Shown here: positions 50,814 through 64,000 of the stretch, piece after piece
Numbering within the stretch: the stretch's first letter is position 1
Layout: each line of letters starts with the position of its first letter
Assembly (NCBI RefSeq): GCF_036588685.1
Contig: NC_086375.1
Span: 77,748,001 to 77,812,000 of the forward strand
DNA from: Mytilus trossulus
Taxonomy: Eukaryota
DNA length: 64,000 bases
Reading direction: 5' to 3'
Position numbers and translations under genes: made by a program
The notes under the pieces: model-generated
Seen by the model: the letters and a program-made list of their open reading frames with translations, nothing else
Databases searched by the model: none
Told to the model about the DNA's origin: nothing

Positions 50814-53800
50814 ATGGCTAACCAAGCAGACGTTATTGTGGTCGGAGCTGGTTTAAGTGGTAAGTATATTTGTATTCATGTCATTTTTTCAATATTTATG
50901 TGAACATGCGATTTTCGTCTTTGGTTGTATCGTAGCAAGGCTAAAAGTATGCTCAATTTAGTTATGGATTGATTTACATAATCTCTGTAAATGAAACAGG
51001 GATTACATCACGTTCTTTGTTTGTTTATTTTATTGGACATTGCATACATTATGTTTTGTTATTGGTCAAGTGGGAAATAAGGCTGATGACGTTTTTTGAA
51101 TATACGACGCATATAATTTTTGACTGATTTTTTTATTTTTAACTTGTTCAGCGAAAATGCTAGAACAATCGATACTTATACAAATGAATAAGGATATATG
51201 GTCGGAAAGTCGAATGACAAATGAAACTCGTAAACAAAACATTTCAAAATTTCGGCAAACTCACAATAAAGACTGTTAAATTGTGTCATTCGGAAAGATA
51301 AGCATAAAAAAATATCATACAACGCATATGCAGCCTTCATATATCACGTTGATTTCATATTTTATATAGTGTTATATAATTTTATATGAAAGTGATTGTA
51401 CTCTCTCATTAAATAATATGAATGTAATATACAGGAATTCCTTAGAAGCTAACCAACCATGATATGCACTTTACACACTTTTCCATGTAGACATTGAAAG
51501 ATCTTAAGACAATCATAAGTACACAAAATACTTCACAGAATTTAAGCTACGTGGTAGATGTGTTTCATATTTGCTGTTGCAGAGCAGCCCTGTTTAAAAT
51601 CGGTCTTTTCTGGGGAAAAAAAAAGGTTTGTGTAGAAAAAGGAGCGGGGTGGTTGGAGAGGAGCACAGGTATCTATCATTTAAATGATAATCACTTACCG
51701 ACTAAGCATAACAAATATATTGTCTATAAAGAAAACATTTTATCCTTATTTTAATTTTCTTATTCTTTTTGGTCGAAAATGTGTGGTGTTTTTGTCTTGT
51801 TTTGTAATACGGTATCTTTTTTTCCTAGTGCTATATTTCAACATCTGGTGCACGTGTTTATTAAAAGAAATAGCTTATACATTTTACCAGGTATGATCAA
51901 GCTTAAATAGTTTGTGTCATTATTCCATGATGTGCATATAATGAAGATCTAGGACAAGATTACAAGTTTAAAGTAAAGAGTAATCAAGTGCTTCACGTTG
52001 ATACTTTTTTTTTTTTATCGTCCCGATAATTTACTTTATTTTTAGATTTTCAGTTTAGATAACAAATTTTTGTTCAAATGTTGATAATTTGATAATGTCA
52101 GTATTATGTCAAACTGTCGGTATCACGACAACATCAAAAGAAAATCTAAAGCATATATGGAAGCGATCGATTCTGATGTAATTTATTATCTTATTTTTTA
52201 ATGGAAAACGTACCAAGCTCGAAAACAGTCGAGATATTTTGCATATTTACCCCCCCCCCCCCCCCCACCAAAAAAAAAATAATAATAAAAAATCCTCAAT
52301 TTTTAAATGTTTATGTATTAACATTCGCATCTGATTTCCTTCCGATACTGTGCTAATCAAGCACAAGGTACTTATCTTTATATGTTTGTAACATACTAAA
52401 TTGCTGCATTCGATGAACATTTAGGATAAGCTTTCATCAGAATCTGTAGAAGTTGAGACGGGAATCAAACACGATAATAGCATTTTGGATGTGTACTTTA
52501 TGATATCTCTGGTGGAGCGGTTGCCGTTGGTTGCTTTCTATATTAACTTGTTTTTTTTTTAATGTTTTAATCGGATAGAAACACATATAAATAAAAAAAA
52601 ATGTCCAGAAACATACATAAGTTCGTTGTTTTTCTTTTCTTTCTTTCATATTTTGTCATGCCTAAGCACTTTCATAGCTAACTAATCGGTTAGTTTTTTT
52701 GGATTTTGCTCATTTTCGAAAGCCGTACCTTGACATATAGTTGTTTAAATTTTCTAGTGAAGAGTTGTTTCGTTAATTGGCAATCAAATCAGATCTTCTT
52801 ATCTTCGTACTGGTTTGTTCAGTATAGCTTTTTTTCAGATTCTTCGATTGTTGTAACCACTATTATGTCCTCTTTTCTCATCTGTTACTCACCTACAGAA
52901 TTAGACTTATCACTGGATTTGTAGTTACATTAACAACCTTTGTCACGTGTGGAGCTAGTTGTACCTTTCCAGAGCACCTGCGATCACACCTTGTTTGTGG
53001 CAGGGTTGTGTTGATCAGACTTTTGTTTTCTATGTATATAGATTATAATTATTACGTTTTTTGTTATGGCTGTAATGCCCATCGCATTGTCAGTTCGTTT
53101 TCTAATTATGAGTTTAACTATTCTTTTGGTATCTTCCGTCTTTCTTTATAGAAGTCATTATAAATAATTAAACTCGATGAGTAGCACCAGATATCAACCA
53201 TGGTTTCTGGGTGGGTTTGTTTTTCTCATTCTTTAGTATTCTGTGTTTTGTATACTGTTGGTTGTCTTTTTGTCGTTTTAAGATGATAGTTTTTTTTTAT
53301 CTCTTTTGTTTAGAATTTTCTCGGTTTTAGTGCTGTCAGCGTATTATGTTTTTGGCTTGTCAATTTTGTGTTTTGCTAGTAACAGTGTCTTACGCTTGAA
53401 CCTCTTTGTGTATCGTACGATTATTTTTGTATCAACAACTTGCGATTTCAATCAATATCTGTCAGGATTCTTTGTGGTATGAAGAGTTTAATATATATAC
53501 ACAAGGACTTATTACTCGAACTTAACTATTGTATATTGAAGCTATTCGTTTACAAAAAAGCAATTAGGTCATATGTATAAGCCAATAAAGACCGTTCAAT
53601 CAGAATATTGCCTGCTGATGAACATATCAAATACTATCACAATTACCAATACATTCTTTTATCGACATCATTTAACAAACTGTCAACCAACGAGTGTCTT
53701 TTAAGGTATTATTTGATGAGTTCATGATCGATATATAGTCTCCTGCAATACTATATGAATAAAAGAAAAACTGCGTTTACTTGTCTTCTATCTTAATTGT

Positions 53801-56800
53801 GACAAGAAATCAATGAATTATGTATACGTGAGTGCACGCAAGAAAGACAACAACGCTGATTTATAAAGTTGATGAGCTAAGATGCCAAAACAAACATTTT
53901 GTGCATTAACTTTACTGTCCTTTTTTGTGAGGTATCGTTAGTACATAAAACAATCTTGTATGATATGAGAGCTGTCTTAATCGTAGATACAGAGAAGAAT
54001 ATAGATATATGAAAATGTGGTGTAAATGCCAATGAGACGACTCTCCATCCAAGTCACATTTTATAAAAGTAAACCATTATAAGTCAAATTACGGTCTTCG
54101 AAACAGAGCCTTGGCTCACATCAAACGGCAAGCTATAAAGGGTCACAAAAAAGACTAGTATAAAACCAATATACGAGAAAAACCAACGGTCTAATCTATA
54201 CCGATCTATACCAAGTCCACTGCTTCGTCTCTTGTCTTGACAAAATTAGAATTATGAAAGAGAGTCGAAATATCTGAATGGGACATGCAAACTCAGAAGT
54301 CGAAAATAAACTGACAACGCCATGACTAAAAAGGAAAATGAAAGACAAACAGACAGTACACTCAACACAACATAGAAAAAAAGAAGACTGGCCAACACGA
54401 ACCCTACAAAATTTTGTAATGGCAATAAATGGATGAAATTAGAGGCTTCTGAAAATCTGGCGAAAATTGTAAAACAAGAGGAGAAAAAAAGTCATTTTTG
54501 ATCAAGTGCAAGAGAAGAGTAGAAAAAGGCAACAGTTAAATAAAACTAACGGAATTAAATAATATCTATTACAGGTTTGTCTGCTGCGAAGCTATTACAC
54601 GAAAAGGGAACTGAAGTTCTTGTTCTCGAGGCACGAGATAGAGTGGGTGGACGGACATTTACAGAACACGTAAGAAACCAAAATTATTAGTATTACACAC
54701 GTAAAAAAACCAACACAGAAACTACACATATAAACATCATATATTCGTGTTTGACAAGCTCAACTAATTTCTATATCACTTTAATTATGTAATTTCGAGA
54801 TAATATGCCTTATGTGTTCTTAGTCAAGCATTTCAGTGTTAAGTTATTCAATCTTTGCTTAAGGTATAATTTTAAAGAAGGTAAATTCATTACTTCCACA
54901 GAAGTTTACACGGTTTATCATTGTACCTCTTAATTCATTCCTGAAATTATTGAGTACAAGTTCTTGATTTGTTTAAGCGATAGTATGAAGTTTCAAGTTG
55001 TTTTAAGCTTGAAGCCGGGTCTGCTTACGTGTCTGGTGCACCACTGAGTACATCAAGTTTTAAGTGGGGTTCGTGTTGCTCAGTTTTTGTTTTTCTTTGA
55101 TGTGTGTTTTTGTACTGCTGTTCTTTATCCTCTATTTTTCAATGTCATAAGAAGACGATACCTCGTCGAAATAGAGGGAAAATAAAGAATAGTAAGGCAA
55201 AGCAAGAATGTTCAGCACTATACAACACTGGTGTTTGTATAAAGCATTACTTTAGGCACCTTCTAGATATTTAGTTGATTCGATTTACGTCATATTGTTC
55301 AATTTGCTGTCTCGTGGATTATTATATTATATCTTTCTACTTTTATATATTGGAAAACACTATATGCTGCTTAACTGTAACTTATTTGTTGAATACAGAC
55401 TTTTATGTATTGTCATTCATTAAATATATGTTACAGGCATTTTCTAAATTTAGGCATTTTGTAAAATGACTGAATTTTCAGGCAATTTATAAAATGCCAG
55501 TTACTTGACAGGCATTATACAAAATGACTAAAAATACATTTTGTAAAATGACTGAAATTTTGGGACAAAATTCAAGAAATTGCTGTTCAGTTTCACGCAA
55601 TTTGTAGAAGAAAAATATCAATGACAAAAGTGGACAAAAACACAATATATTGCAAACAAAATAACTTATGGTTCCGAAGAATTAATTTATGTTCCAAAAT
55701 CCAGCTGGGATAGATGTATGTCATATGATATGTTCTTTTTAGTGAAACTATGTAAAAGTACGTACTCACTTGTAATTCAGATACCAGCAGTGAACTTATA
55801 ATTTTTTATGACAGAGAGACAAATTTGTCTGTCAATAGAACAAAATTAATAATAGAATTTTCAAAACAGTAAAGCGAAACGTATGTTGACTAAGATTTTT
55901 TTTTAATTCACTGATTGCTGTTTGTTTGCTTTCAGTGTCAAATATGTCATGTATTTTGAGACGTGACCAAATTTATATGGGTTATATCTGTAGGGGATTG
56001 ACCTGAATAAAAGACTGCCGCTTGCAATTAAAATGAAGGTATTTTGGATAGGGACAGACATTCCACCTGCAGAACACCCATGAATAAAAAAAATAAAGTT
56101 CTTAACGTGTATAAAGTGTTGCATTTAACTGACATATGGCAATATATTTAATGTTCCCTTTCAGAAATATTGAGCATTTTAAATTTTTACATTCACATCG
56201 AAACAAACTCCGCTCTACAATAAAAAGTAAAAACACAAAAATACCGAACTCCGAGGAAAATTCAAAAGGAAAATCCAAAATCAAAAGGCAAAATCAAAAG
56301 TCCAAACACATCAAACGAATGGATAACAACTGTCATATTCCTGACTTGGTACAGGCATTTTCTAAAGTAGAAAATGGTGGATTGAACCTGGTTTTATAGC
56401 TAGCTAAACCTCTCACTTGTATGACAGTCGTATCAATATGGGTTTCGCCATACAATTCGTGTTTTGTTGTGATGCAAATATATGGTTGGCAGTGTCATCA
56501 GATACATTTTAAAAAGTCCAGGACAAATATTGTGTAACAGTTCTGTCACCTAAATATTTTGAGAAATGATATATAATTGTTTTTGGAATATAATTCTGTA
56601 AAATGTATTCTTGATTTTCAAAGGTTTCAATTGTTTCGTTTTTTTTAACATTTCATTCTAAATCAATTTCAGGCAGTTTGTAAAATGTCTTTCGATTTTT
56701 CCAGGCATTTTGTAAAACGCCTAGAAAAATTAGTCACCATGTATAATGACTGAATCTTTCAGGAATTTTAGAAAATGCCTAAAACTTTTAGGCATTTTTT

Positions 56801-59800
56801 AAAATTCCTGCAAGCGGAGGAAAGGTACTATATTGTAAAGAAGGACACAGATACATTGTTCAACTATCTCTAAAAACATTATCCAGAAAACTAAATATAG
56901 ATAAATGTTATTCACAACAGTAGTTGATATTTTTCATTGGACTTTATAGAATGGCAGGAATTATAATTTCCTATAAATAGAATCGTTATAGAAGCGAATC
57001 TAGAGAACAAAATGAGCAATCAATAACGCACTTATTAAAAACTGTATACAATCGTATATGTAGAATGAAAATGATTTTAATTAAATTCATTCCAATTAAT
57101 TTCATTTAAGAATCCAAAAGTGAAATATGTCGATCTAGGTGGTGCATACGTGGGTCCAACTCAAAACCGCATCTTAAGATTAGCAGATGAATTTGGCATC
57201 GACACATACCTAACAAATGAAGTTGAAGATGTTATTTTTTATACAAAGGTAAGTGGCATTATCCTGACTATCATGCAAAATGGTAGAAGATGCCAAATAA
57301 TGCTTCTTTTACATTTTGTTGTTTCGTATGGTCATTGTGTGCAACCAACTTGACATGCGCAATGCCAGATAAATACAAACCTTCTCCAGATTTTTTTCAG
57401 GTTATACGATCATCATCAATGAACGAAAAAACACATATACGTCTTGGAACTTAACCGAAATATGTAATACAAACCAGACGTGAACTTTTAAACGAACACA
57501 TGAACAATTATACGGCTTCATGATACCTTAGAAATTCAGAAGTATGATTTATCAACATGGAAAACACAAACACAGTATTTAATTTACAACATTGAAACCA
57601 CTCATTATCAAATTAATTAGGACAATCACATTGAATATTTTCTAATTCCCGAAAATTTTGCGAACTTGCTTGGATCAAAAACCTTTAGACAGCGTTTTCC
57701 CCGGATCTTAATTAAACATAACGAGGGAGCATATCCCAAAAAGAACCGCCATTAATATCATTATATTTAACAAAAGACAACATATTCATATCTTTCTTTT
57801 ACTCTAAATCGATACTTAATTGTAAAACACTGAAGTAAGTGAGAATGTCCTTTATTTGAACTGCTTTTAATGCCTTTTAGCTTATATATAACTGTAGAAA
57901 TTATGATATAATAGATTTGAACGAAGTATTATATACCAAATCTAAAACAGTTTTCACTTATAAAATGACAGTTCCAATGATGTTGTATTTAAGCACAAAT
58001 GTATTTGGCTGGTGCGACTCTAGGACGAAACCTACACAAGCAGTGATATCGATTCAGTGTATGTCATAACTCGTCAAAGATATCTGCCTTATTATTCAGT
58101 ACGCCATATATCTTCATGAATAAAGGCAACAGTAGTATACCGGTGTTAAAACGTCACAAATCGAATGACAATTGACAAATCCGGGTTATAAACCAAAACC
58201 GAGGGGAATATATTAACTATGGGAGGAAAACAAATAGTACTGGGAAAATGATGATATCATTTATATAGATATAAAAAGAGGAGGTATGAGTACCAATGGG
58301 ACAACTATCCATCCAATTCACAATTTATAAAAGTAAACCATTAAGCATTATAGGTCAAAGAACAGTCTTAAAACGGAACCTTAGCTAAAACCGAACAGCA
58401 TGCTATAAAGGACTGTCCCAAGTCAGGAGCCTCTGGCCTTTGTTAGTCTTGTATTATTTAAATTTTAGTTTCTTGTGTACAATTTGGAAATTAGTATGGC
58501 GTTCATTATCACTGAACTAGTATATATTTGTTTAGGGGCCAGCTGAAGGACGCCTCCGGGTGCGGGAATTTCTCGCTACATTGAAGACCTGTTGGTGACC
58601 TTCTGCTGTTGTGTTTTTTTATTTTGGTCGGGTTGTTGTCTCTTTGACACATTCCCCATTTCCATTCTCAATTTTACTAGTGTAAAACCATTCTAACGGT
58701 CTATCTATACAAAAGAGAAAAGAAAAATGAGAAACACTTATGGACCACATCAACAAAGGACAACCACCCTTATTTGAACCAATAGTGTAGCATCACAACA
58801 TATATTTATATATATATATATATATATACAAGTATACAACTACGTTTAAACCATTTAAGCGACTTGGTGGTCGAGTTGTCTAGCGTGTCGGATACAGGGC
58901 AGGCGATTTGGTGCCACGGTATCTCAGAAATATGAGTTCGAATCCCGGCTAGGAAAGAACAAAAAAATGAAACGACAAATTAACAAATCTAAAATTGTTG
59001 GGCTGATGTTTATATTTATTATTGTTACTTTGTACATTATTTCTGGGGTATGTAAATATAAAAGATATTTTAATATATATAAATTACAAACCGAAAAATA
59101 ATCAAAGAATGCTGGGAGATACCGAAAGTAAGTTAAAAATATTAAACATGTTGATAGAAAGCTACACACAAATATCGCATGGAAGGAATAATTGATATAC
59201 ATGCTCAATAAAGTTGTTTTGTTGGCAATCATACCATATCTCATCATTTATTTTTATATCAATTTTCTCTAAGTACGGATCAATTACATTAAAATCCCCC
59301 TGAACAATCTACCTCTAAAATGAAATCACAAAACTCCTGTTCACATACTACAATGCATTGGATACTGATCAATTAATACAATTTCACATGTTAATAATTA
59401 TACTCTCATACAGGATGGATACTTTAAATATTCTTCAATTTTAGGGAAAATCAAAACGATTCACTGGAACATTTCCACCAATGGGAAGTTGTCTGGCATA
59501 CATGGATATGAACAATTTGTTTCGACTTATCGACAAAATGGGCGAAGAGGTTTGTCTTGTATTGCATAAAACCCAACGATGAGAGAGAAAAAGAATAATG
59601 AATTGGCATTTTTTTCATGAAGGAGAAAACATATCAACCTGTAATTACATTTTCTTTAATAACGAAGAGTTTTACTGAACAAAGCCATATATCAATATAT
59701 TTAATTTTCTGTTACTTATAATGAAAATTGTTTTTGAACAGATCAAAATTAATGTTTTAAAATTGGAGAATGATTTCAATAAACAAGAATTTACTGCTAA

Positions 59801-62800
59801 CCGAACATGACAATACATGTATCGAGAAAAAATATTTGTTTTTCTAAAAATGCACATTCCTATTCATTTGGTCGAAAATACGTTTGTCTTAATACTTATT
59901 AGATACCTATGGAGGCGCCATGGGATGCACCGAAAGCAAAGGAATGGGATTCAATGACAGTCAAAGAATTTTTAGATAATAATGTGTGGACAGCGTAAGA
60001 ATTAATTATTTCATTAATTGTTTTATTCCAATTTTCTTTTTGGAACTTAATAATCCAGCATTTATTTTAAGGCAATTAAAATCAATATCTGTCATTAAAA
60101 ACTTTTAACAGAGACGCCTTATAATGGTACTTAATTTTTTTACGATCGAAAATAAAATAAATGACCTACAAAAACCCTCAATAGAGACGACCAAATAAAA
60201 AAAAAAGAATCACCAAAGACAAATTAAGGTTCATCTGCATAAGGAAAATTGAAAAATACGGCCGTGTTTACACCTCATAATTTACTTAAGTACAGTCAAA
60301 CTGAGGAAAGTTTTAAGGCATGGCAGGAACTAGATATATAAAGTTATATGTAGTATACGTTTCAGAAATTTAAATACTTACCTGGATTTCGATGTCCAGT
60401 TTGTTCCAGTTTGCAAAAGATAGCAAAAGAAACAAACACCTGAGTTTCATTTGATAAGGTCCACTCATTGACACAGTATAAATCACCTATTGTCTGCAGA
60501 TGTCAATTGTCCATCTATTGTTCATTTAAATCAATACTCCTCACAATATGTATAATATGAGGGGAGATTATCAACCTCTTTCCCATCTGAGCTTATTTTG
60601 GCACCTTCTTCAGGAACTTAAAAAGAACTGGATAGCAAAATCTAGTACAGTTATAAATTTCTAAAAAATAAAAAGCATTTAAAATGTATATATCTAGTTC
60701 CTATCATCCCTTAAAACTTTTGTAGGTGCATAGGTTTGTCTGTACTCAGAGTAAAATGTGTGGTGTTAATACGGCCATCTTAGTCTAAAGGTTATGGTGA
60801 ACCTTAATATCGGATACAAAAACACTTGCAGAAACAACTTTAACTGAGACAACAAAAAATTAAAGTCATACGAAACGAGTGACCGATTAAAAATAATGTT
60901 ATTCCCATTCTTAAACCAATGCATACAAACATTATAAACTTAGTCTTCTGTGCACGATTTTATCTTTTTTTTCGCATAAATTTCATATACTAGTAATCGT
61001 CATTTTGTTTTTCAATCGGTCAGTGTTGTTGTAAAACTATGACAGGTAATTAAAGTTCATGTTTTGAAGCCGTACTTTAACGATTGTCACCTGTTTGTCA
61101 ACAATCAACAAAAAAAAACATGGATATTGAGAAGGTGTTTAACATGTACAATTAAATGATAGATTATTTTTAAAAGAACATCCATGCGTATTGCGATCAC
61201 CGGATTTTTACGAGATGGGTCACACTGAGGTCACTTTGCATACGAAAAATATGTCGGGAAATTGCTTCCTGGAAGGAAGCATATAAAATAAAGTAACTTC
61301 TTCTTAATATGAACAAATTAAAGAATGTTCTTCAGAAAAAAGTTTATGTACATAAGTTTTATAATGAAAACTATCCATTGAGTTATAAAAACATATGCAT
61401 TATTTTTTTTAATTTGAGGTTTCTTATGACATTAAAACCGACACACAAAAAAATTGACAGACACAACTTCATATTTGACACAAAAATTTTGAAAAGAGAC
61501 GATACAACATGCAAAATCTTTTGACAAAAATATATCTATACCTTATAACTATTCAAACATTCCAGATTTCAGTGATGCGTACTGAATGCAAGGATCAATG
61601 ATAGGTTATAATAACCAATCGCTGACCTTTAAATACCTAATATAATGTGTTTGAAGTATATGTATTTGTAAGAAGAAAATGTGGTATACTATTTCTGTTT
61701 CATAGTGCAGCTAAAGCGTTTGCAACATGCTTCGTACAAGTGAATGTGACCTCCGAACCTTATGAGGTATCTTTATTATGGCTGCTTTGGTATGTTAAAT
61801 GTGCAGGAGGTTCCATGCGAATCTATTCGACAACTAATGGAGGGCAGGTGATTAAACAATGTCTTTGATGTAGTAAAGTTGTCTGTAGGAATTGCATTTT
61901 ATTATCTGCACGTTTTTAAAGTTCAATATATTTTTTAATTTTTGTATTTGTTTTAGTTTTCGTTTGTTTTGTATGTTATGTTTGATTGTTTGTTTTTGTT
62001 TTTGTTTGTCTTCCTTTTTGTATTTACAAATTGTTCAGTATTGTACGAAGATTCGGAACAGCATTTACCAACGTAAATATGACTTCTGAACCAGAAGAGA
62101 GTTCTTTGTTGTGGTTTTTGTGGTATATTCGTCAATGTGGTGGCTGTAGCAGAATAAATTCAACAGAAAATGGGGGACAGGTCAGGTTTGGTATTCGAAA
62201 TAATTTAACTAATAACATATCTACAGCATTTTTTTTAGTGCAAGATAAAAAGAAATTAACAATAATTCAGATTAACTTACTAACCTTTTACGTTTTATTT
62301 TACTTTTTTATGACACATTTGTATAGAGGAAATAGGGTTACTGATACCATTTTAGAAAATTAAGATAAAAAAAATGTATTTCCTTAAAAGTACCATCACC
62401 GCTATAACATGAAAGGCGGAATAAAATGAAAAGATTTTTCAAACTACAAGTTAGTGGCATTATTTTATTTAAATCAAAATATTTCTTTATTTCAGGAAAG
62501 AAAATTTGTAGGCGGTTCTCAACAGATAAGCAAACGGATTGTAGAAAAATTAGGAAAAGGTTTGTTTTCTAAATAAAAAAGCAGTTAGTTAAGAGTTGAA
62601 TATGGCCATGCTTGCCCCTCCTTTTATTAGCTCATCTGGCCCAAAATTGACCCCCTAGGGAGTTATTGCCCTTTTTAGTCAATTTTTAACAATTTTCATA
62701 AAATTTGTAAATTTTCACTAACATTTTCCACTGAATCTTTTGGGCCAAATTCATTATAGATTTAGATAATTGTAAGCAGCAAGAATTTTTAAGAAAGTAA

Positions 62801-64000
62801 GATCTACAAACACATCCTCATCACCAAAACACAATTGTGTCATTAATCCATCTGTGTCCTTTGTTTAATATTCACATAGACCAAGGTGAGCGACACAGGC
62901 TCTAGTTTATATTTCCAGTGCTATGTGTTATTGCGAATTTAAGAAGTATATACTAATGTACAGGAAGGAACGAAGGCTTTATATCCCAAGTAAAATATAA
63001 TATGTTTTATTGATTGATTAATGAAATATACTTGCATTTTTATCTCTTACAGGATGTCAGAATTTTCTTCTATTTTTACGGTGTGGGTTAGTTGTAAAGT
63101 TTGACTTGGAAATACTCATTCAGGTTTTTTTAACATTCATATTTGATATTTGATATTATGTTCCCTATAAACAAGTTTTTTCGTTTATGATTCGTGTTAC
63201 TCAGGCTCCAGTTGTAAAGTTGTGAACTCTTTACTGTTCTTTGTCTTATGGTCATGTTTTGGCCATAACGTTTATTTTCAACTTATGAAATTAATCACTC
63301 TTTGATTTATTTTGCCTCTCTATGCCAAAACATGCAGGAATAACTTTTTTTTTCATTTATACAGAAAAAGTTATCCTCAGTTGTCCTGTTTGTCATATAA
63401 AACAGAATGGTAGCGATGTCACAATTAAAGATCTCCATGGAAACACTTATATGGTCAGTTATATTTAGAATAGACGTCACTCAAGTTTCACTTTGTAGAA
63501 AAAAAACTATGGCTTCATAATTTTACCTTTTTCTATATATTTTTTATAATTTTTTTCTCTATCCAATGTTTAATCCTGAGAGAAAATGCATAACGTTATT
63601 GCTTAGACGGACGAGATAACATGATAAGTATGACAATATTTTAAGAATGCAATTATTGTGTAATTCTTTAAATGAATTTTATTGTTTGATATATTTTGTT
63701 CATATGATTTTATTTTTGAATATGTTATCATTATCTCTAGGCTCGTATAGTAGCTTCAGGTTTCTTTTCAAGTAAAAATTGTTGATGCTGTATACGATTA
63801 TCATTTGAAGTGATTTATACCATTTTTTTATTAACTATTTTTGCAGGCAAAATATGTGATAATGTCAGTTCCAGTACCACTACAAAACAGAATAGTATAT
63901 GAGCCTCCATTACCGGCAAACCGAAATCAGTTGATTCAGCGAATGCCTATGGGATCTGTAATAAAAACCTTTATGTATTATGACACACCATTCTGGAGGA
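50814..64000 (+). CDS. MAO: Flavin-containing monoamine oxidase (MAO-A/B family), 5' part; continues beyond the window
   Basis: Exons 50814-50859, 54575-54669, 57111-57248, 59445-59549, 59903-59994, [61706-61847 or 62039-62180], 62496-62559, 63365-63453 and 63847->64000. Motifs: [84 protein letters not shown]. Confidence 0.96.
54010..54200 (+). repeat. Interspersed repeat family; other copies at 37540-37676 + 46807-46833 + 48119-48240 (split), 48260-48430 and 58270-58770, with relatives at 49895-50070 and 8130-8295
   Basis: Shared gccaatgagac.actctccatccaagtcac...agccttggctcaca...ctataaaggg...actagtgtaaaacca...aaccaacggtctaatcta. Confidence 0.75.
55433..56811. mobile_element. Probable old non-autonomous DNA element bounded by arrays of a palindromic GGCATTTTGTAAAATG(A/C)C motif
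   Basis: Motif clusters at 55434-55560 and 56670-56810; ends caggcattttctaaa / ttttaaaattcctg are imperfectly inverted. Confidence 0.5.
58859..58995 (+). mobile_element. tRNA-derived SINE head in MAO intron 3
   Basis: A-box-like ggtggtcgagttgtcta and B-box gagttcgaatcc, followed by an A-rich body; no clean cloverleaf. Confidence 0.6.
61706..61847 (+). CDS. MAO: MAO exon 6a (candidate mutually exclusive exon; Tyr at the MAO-B 199 position)
   Basis: tttcatag| 142 nt |gtgatt; [47 protein letters not shown]. Confidence 0.9.
62039..62180 (+). CDS. MAO: MAO exon 6b (candidate mutually exclusive exon; Asn at the MAO-B 199 position)
   Basis: ttgttcag| 142 nt |gtcagg; [47 protein letters not shown]. 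Confidence 0.88.
62622..62908 (+). mobile_element. Internally deleted copy of HINE family B in an MAO intron
   Basis: ttttattagctcatctggcc...aattgacccc...ccaaggtgagcgacacaggctctagttt matches both ends of 28869-30708 and lacks the tandem array. Confidence 0.8.

Follow-up and report, generated by a model that had tools for sequence, protein, structure and literature searches.

Tandem, apparently mutually exclusive exons encode the substrate-gate segment of a Mytilus monoamine oxidase

Introduction

The closest mechanistic precedent for the exon arrangement described here is COQ-2, in which the mutually exclusive exons 6a and 6e, equal in length, reshape the core of the enzyme and change the substrate it uses; the event is found in helminths, annelids and molluscs. 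This switch decides between ubiquinone and rhodoquinone synthesis, and it has been demonstrated with RNA-seq support and genetics (PMC7434440). The mussel monoamine oxidase (MAO) gene analysed here is alike in having one exon near the pan-eukaryotic form and another that is lineage-restricted, and the COQ-2 event also occurs in molluscs (PMC7434440). The two systems differ in that the substrate switch, its RNA-seq support and its genetics were demonstrated for COQ-2, whereas a switch of specificity in MAO is a prediction.

The vertebrate enzymes MAO-A and MAO-B belong to the same family as the mussel protein, which along its full length shares ∼57% of its residues with the human enzymes, can be numbered alike as far as residue 206 and has the same catalytic residues. 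Moreover, gate residue 199 (208 in MAO-A), one of the positions that set the two vertebrate enzymes apart, lies in the 142-nt exon at issue. The vertebrate pair, however, stems from a whole-gene duplication and differs throughout, including at gate 326/335, whereas the mussel swaps 47 residues within one gene. Homologous exons in tandem that match in length and phase also occur in Dscam, 14-3-3 zeta and MRP1, which use competing RNA pairing; in mussel MAO, a search in the DNA of this one genome found no docking/selector complementarity, and exclusivity is enforced at least by the reading frame.

In bivalves and gastropods, serotonin, dopamine and related amines govern spawning and the beating of cilia as well as larval settlement and metamorphosis, and experimenters treat these animals with MAO inhibitors. 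If one gene yields two or three substrate pockets, expression, inhibitor and ecotoxicology studies that treat mollusc MAO as a single enzyme are incomplete. Splicing in molluscs would then do what MAO-A and MAO-B do together in vertebrates, and MAO would clearly join COQ-2 as the second mollusc enzyme with an active site that is re-specified through the choice of exon. Nature would also have run an experiment on a gate residue that medicinal chemists have already mutagenised. The practical value is modest, since the isoforms are already present in public annotation; what is new here is the location of their differences at the substrate gate and the consistent aromatic/polar contrast with which they reappear in other molluscs.

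Results and Discussion

A MAO-A/B orthologue in which only exon 6 is duplicated

This genome has one close orthologue of vertebrate MAO-A/B, and the window, a stretch of 64,000 nucleotides from Mytilus trossulus, covers two-thirds of that gene from its 5' end. A gene model was built from the window plus 20 kb of downstream sequence by chaining GT/AG-bounded exons with a script. It comprises 15 coding exons of 46, 95, 138, 105, 92, 142, 64, 89, 160, 97, 112, 98, 112, 63 and 144 nt, and exon 6 is the only one that is duplicated. All exons in the window lie on the plus strand. The coding part of exon 1 (50814-50859, start codon at 50814) shows an exact spliced fit to the database proteins P0323 and P0329 (tblastn 100%). 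It is followed by exon 2 (54575-54669, 95 nt) with the GxGxxG region for FAD binding, exon 3 (57111-57248, 138 nt), exon 4 (59445-59549, 105 nt) and exon 5 (59903-59994, 92 nt), whose donor is common to both alternatives. Downstream of the exon 6 pair lie exon 7 (62496-62559, 64 nt), which provides the common acceptor, exon 8 (63365-63453, 89 nt) and exon 9 (63847-64000), a 160-nt exon with its last 6 nt beyond the window end. Six further coding exons lie outside the window, and the stop codon is found 9,418 nt past its end.

Residues 1-516 of P0329 aligned to residues 1-515 of human MAO-B (E 7e-199), and a similar match was obtained to MAO-A (E 3e-194). Pfam domain PF01593 is precomputed on the cluster that contains P0323 and P0329. 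In an alignment of 33 sequences, S395, G396, G397, C398 and Y399 were invariant and aligned to the SGGCY motif for covalent FAD attachment of MAO-B. K297 and Y399 were invariant and Y436 nearly so, and these residues align to K296, Y398 and Y435 of MAO-B. Both mussel isoforms have a phenylalanine at residue 327, which corresponds to Y326 of MAO-B. Judged by these features, the product of the gene is a full MAO-A/B orthologue with a predicted activity in monoamine deamination.

The sizes of human MAO exons 2 to 6 (95, 138, 105, 92 and 142 nt) are identical to those of the mussel gene, and the exon 6 boundary would therefore predate the protostome/deuterostome split. Further downstream, the 150-nt human exon 7 is split by an extra intron in the mussel (64 nt at 62496-62559 and 89 nt at 63365-63453), and human exons 10 and 11, of 54 and 58 nt, correspond to a single fused exon of 112 nt.

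A diverged MAO-like gene is present on another contig (G000:C2:88593779-88645503), with exons that are 45-73% identical to those of the main MAO gene; a single equivalent of exon 6 was found in it, ending in ...KMSDTSGGAQ|gt. The mussel thus has a MAO paralogue besides the exon switch. With this paralogue, and with a tandem MAO paralogue in scallops, the suggestion of the initial annotation that this lineage uses exon switching rather than gene duplication was too strong. As a separate feature of the locus, intron 5 contains an inverted repeat (60307-60345 and 60682-60720) with arms of 39 nt that are 87% complementary and 336 nt apart, and its appearance suggests the two termini of a small transposable element.

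Exons 6a and 6b are equivalent in size and phase and have diverged for a long time

The two versions of exon 6 are located at 61706-61847 (6a) and 62039-62180 (6b). Both are 142 nt long and have the same phase, and both are preceded by a pyrimidine-rich tract ending in AG, followed by GT and free of stop codons in the common frame. By direct reading, the borders of 6a are tttcatag|TGC...CAG|gtgatt and those of 6b are ttgttcag|TAT...CAG|gtcagg. The intron that separates the alternatives (61848-62038, plus strand) measures 191 nt. A six-frame search of the whole 1.3-Gb genome returned 6a and 6b as the only close copies, plus one weak match in a different gene on another contig.

With 476 nt of coding sequence upstream (46+95+138+105+92), each exon encodes residues 160-206 together with the final base of the codon for residue 159. 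Each exon 6 peptide by itself matched human and rat MAO-A/B (E ∼1e-15 to 4e-12) and aligned to MAO-B residues 161-206. The peptides are identical at 27 of 47 residues (57%) and the exons at 80 of 142 nucleotides, and 16 of the 27 identical residues are specified by different codons. When 6a and 6b were compared as paralogues, pS was 0.84, which is saturated, and pN was 0.32; the duplication is therefore old, and both copies have been constrained. At positions 167, 170, 173 and 199, exon 6a has C, Q, V and Y, and exon 6b has A, N, M and N. The initial annotation had described this arrangement of tandem, stop-free, same-phase exons, along with its residue identities, its MAO-B numbering and an old duplication of which both copies were maintained despite heavy silent divergence, and it was accurate on each of these points. 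We refer to 6a, which is the conserved exon, as A-type and to the fast-evolving 6b as B-type.

Only transcripts with a single exon 6 keep the reading frame

The length of 142 nt is not a multiple of three, and transcripts with both exons or with neither consequently run into early stops, in line with the frame argument on which the initial annotation had relied. With both exons included, the first stop falls at codon 223 (62087, within 6b), and with neither it falls at codon 164 (62509, within exon 7). Since 8-9 exon junctions lie downstream of each of these stops, both types of transcript should, by the general rule, undergo nonsense-mediated decay. Among the proteins on record, P0323 and P0329 carry one exon 6 each, and P0331, a Mytilus protein from a transcript assembly, carries 6a. 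The proposed mutually exclusive architecture is supported at the level of gene structure by the frame rule, by P0323 and P0329 as the 6a and 6b forms, and by recurrence of the alternatives in other mussels, oyster, scallops and abalone.

A search for docking/selector pairing in the DNA of this one genome found no such elements in this locus and returned only AT-rich inverted matches of low complexity, and the 6a-6b intron was less structured than shuffled controls (fold z = +1.71). Steric exclusion is an unlikely cause of exclusivity because an intron of 191 nt is too long for it, and neither donor resembles a minor-spliceosome site. Most of the 6a-6b intron, which is without a stable fold, is occupied by T/G-rich repeats with a period of ∼18 nt (61911-62018) that extend into the acceptor tract of 6b. 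As a speculation, these repeats might be a candidate binding platform for a splicing regulator.

Both isoforms are on record and are predicted to keep the MAO fold

A protein search seeded with abalone MAO led to a cluster containing P0323 (6a form) and P0329 (6b form), which come from the same contig as the window. Each is 518 amino acids long, and residue for residue they are the spliced translations of the gene model. They differ from each other at 20 positions, all within residues 160-202. The same cluster contains isoforms X1 and X2 of Mytilus galloprovincialis, from which the protein of this genome differs at 7 of 471 residues outside exon 6.

Modelling both isoforms had been proposed as a check, and the AlphaFold models were of equal confidence (pLDDT 82.7 and 82.5, pTM 0.84), with near-equal secondary structure over residues 159-210. 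The 6b model superimposed on solved MAO-B and MAO-A structures with TM scores of 0.90-0.94, and both models have a terminal helix at residues 490-517, as for the C-terminal membrane-anchor helix of the MAO fold. Stretches of low confidence were confined in both models (mbeb3204fc301 and m320ebae64fd0) to residues 54-59, 286-293 and 397-405. These include the flavin-attachment motif, where the low confidence probably reflects modelling without the cofactor.

The initial annotation knew of no description of such a switch. As far as papers are concerned this still stands, since full-text literature searches returned no description of an alternative exon 6 in any MAO. The isoforms themselves are not new to public databases, however, where predicted X1/X2 records already exist as automated entries in about a dozen mollusc genomes.

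Alternative versions of exon 6 recur across molluscs

In M. galloprovincialis and two further Mytilus assemblies, equal-length isoforms were found that, when compared from end to end, proved to differ in exon 6 only. A more distant mussel is represented by P0152, a read-through open reading frame of 164 amino acids in which the end of a 6a-like exon is followed by an intron of ∼220 nt and a 6b-like exon. As P0152 joins these two elements, the tandem order 6a-6b is conserved in this mussel. Equal-length isoform pairs with differing exon 6 segments are also present in the oyster C. gigas and in the scallops M. yessoensis, A. irradians and P. maximus, and an annotated pearl-oyster (Pinctada) protein contains a B-type exon. 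Among the records listed, C. angulata has a B-type isoform only. The abalone H. rufescens has three isoforms, X1, X2 and X3, of 544 amino acids each; over their whole length these differ only in residues 186-232, which correspond to exon 6, indicating three alternatives. The differences between H. asinina X1 and X2 likewise fall in the exon 6 segment, and the deposited MAO record of H. discus hannai is of the X1 type. The alternatives are thus retained in related species, with four Mytilus assemblies and the more distant mussel joined by oyster, abalone and three scallops.

A maximum-likelihood tree of 43 exon 6 peptides grouped the polar-199 alternatives of mussels, pearl oyster, oysters and scallops with abalone X3 (support 97/88, from 47 columns). 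This B-type clade was lost upon removal of columns 40, 43 and 46, yet a tree constrained to contain it was no worse (AU p = 0.51). A single ancient origin of the B-type exon is likely on these sequence comparisons. We conclude that the exon pair is real, that its members are in all likelihood mutually exclusive, and that it is probably ancient.

The alternatives differ at the gate of the substrate pocket

Position 199 of MAO-B, which aligns with F208 of MAO-A, is the gate between the entrance and substrate cavities. The initial annotation had singled out the difference between the exons at this residue, Y in 6a and N in 6b, and the contrast proved to extend well beyond this genome. Wherever alternatives are annotated, the lineage has one or more exons with an aromatic residue at this position (Y in mussels; F in oysters, scallops and two of the three abalone exons) and another with a polar residue, which is N or H in mussels, H in oysters, Q in scallops and, in abalone X3, N. 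The published cavity-lining positions within exon 6 are 164, 167, 168, 171, 172, 188, 198, 199 and 206, and exons 6a and 6b of this genome differ at two of the nine, 167 and 199. The pocket differences listed previously, at 167, 170, 173 and 199, hold for these two positions, but 170 and 173 are absent from the published cavity list.

It is plausible from these substitutions that the isoforms have different substrate and inhibitor specificities. One alternative is that both isoforms are made and that the swap tunes stability, reactivity with O2, membrane or partner interactions, or sensitivity to dietary or environmental inhibitors, and not amine preference. On the published list, 18 of the 20 differing positions are off the cavity and seven of the nine cavity positions are identical, as this alternative would have it, and a swap of residue 199/208 reportedly changed substrate preference in rat MAO with little effect in human MAO. 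Nonetheless, the aromatic/polar contrast at 199 is the most consistent difference across lineages. Furthermore, solved MAO-B mutant structures with inhibitors (I199F, I199A and I199A/Y326A, according to their titles) exist since this residue controls ligand access.

Exon 6a is frozen and exon 6b changes fast

The A-type exon was identical at all 47 residues across four Mytilus assemblies. In contrast, between 1 and 10 of the 47 residues of 6b differed among the same assemblies, compared to 1.3-4.0% of the remaining protein. In the extreme pair, 9 of 47 residues differed in 6b against 6 of 471 in the remainder (p = 6.5e-7). The protein P0322, from another Mytilus assembly, shows these counts against this genome: 9 of the 47 residues of its 6b differ, three of them being newly gained cysteines, with 6 differences in the 471 residues of the remainder. 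Such a 6b could stem from a sudden run of substitutions or represent a divergent allele of old standing.

To describe where 6b changes, columns of exon 6 were called family-invariant when their conservation among all MAO exon 6 sequences not of the B-type was 90% or more, which gave 22 columns. Mytilid 6b exons retain 19-21 of these 22 invariant residues. The variable sites of 6b avoid them (4 of 22 invariant columns against 13 of the 25 others, p = 0.03), and several of these sites are cavity positions (164, 167 and 199). A dead exon would explain this pattern less well than a functional one on which selection is weaker or diversifying. At the sequence level, the fast change of 6b would agree equally well with relaxed constraint and with adaptive change.

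Is 6b used?

The most serious alternative is that 6b is a barely used or non-productive duplicate that was modelled by homology in the annotation, so that the gene effectively makes one MAO. All transcript-assembly proteins that were inspected have the A-type exon, namely P0331 as the one from Mytilus and 10 of 10 from oyster among those listed. Likewise in keeping with disuse, 6b changes ∼15 times faster than the remaining protein between two close mussels and has gained three cysteines in one lineage, and its donor has a C at position +3. A search with the 6b exon plus read-through against candidate fragments of 48-152 amino acids gave no match, a blank that does not speak for absence; when a 6b-like peptide was used in one metagenome scan, the only matches were two single-copy loci that are unrelated. 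Against disuse, polar-199 B-type exons are intact and in frame in mussels, pearl oyster, oyster, scallops and abalone, and such an exon is included in the annotated Pinctada protein. Moreover, the synonymous sites between 6a and 6b are saturated at a pN of 0.32, and substitutions in 6b shun the family-invariant columns. We consider it unlikely that 6b is a disused copy, and about as unlikely that both isoforms are made but differ in properties other than amine preference.

The reading that we favour, with a probability of about 0.72, is that one MAO gene yields two 518-residue enzymes through the swap of exons 6a and 6b, that 6a is the default form and 6b a minor or specialised one, and that the two should differ in the amines and inhibitors they accept. 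Each transcript would take either 6a or 6b, giving proteins that differ at the 20 positions in residues 160-202. Exon 6a would be the default because it has the aromatic Y199, is invariant in the genus and is the form in the sole inspected Mytilus transcript-assembly protein. Exon 6b, with the polar N199, would be the minor or specialised one, and the B-type form is probably minor or restricted in general, since the inspected transcript-assembly proteins, one from Mytilus and ten from oyster among those listed, are all A-type. The case for 6b expression is built on the predicted isoform records, on the annotated protein of the pearl oyster, which uses a B-type exon, and on conservation over long times. 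In the proposed mechanism, inclusion of 6b would take away the large side chain that forms the gate from the entrance cavity to the substrate cavity, and would alter cavity position 167, and from these two changes a difference in accepted amines and inhibitors should follow.

A wider version of this reading is put forward only tentatively. The gate-exon switch may predate the pteriomorph radiation, and possibly the split between bivalves and gastropods, and it may combine a frozen aromatic exon with a fast polar exon that changes quickly at pocket-facing positions. In that case one gene would give MAO two specificities, or three in abalone, and amine signalling would perhaps draw on them differently by tissue or larval stage.

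A possible third copy of exon 6 in this genome was also considered, at 60554-60613, the place in the neighbouring introns that scored best. Its best match was the abalone X3 exon (E 0.012, 39% over 18 amino acids), which is non-significant after correction for 43 queries, and the candidate was rejected as an exon. The weak resemblance is to the middle of exon 6, several 6b queries match this same spot, and it could be a decayed third copy.
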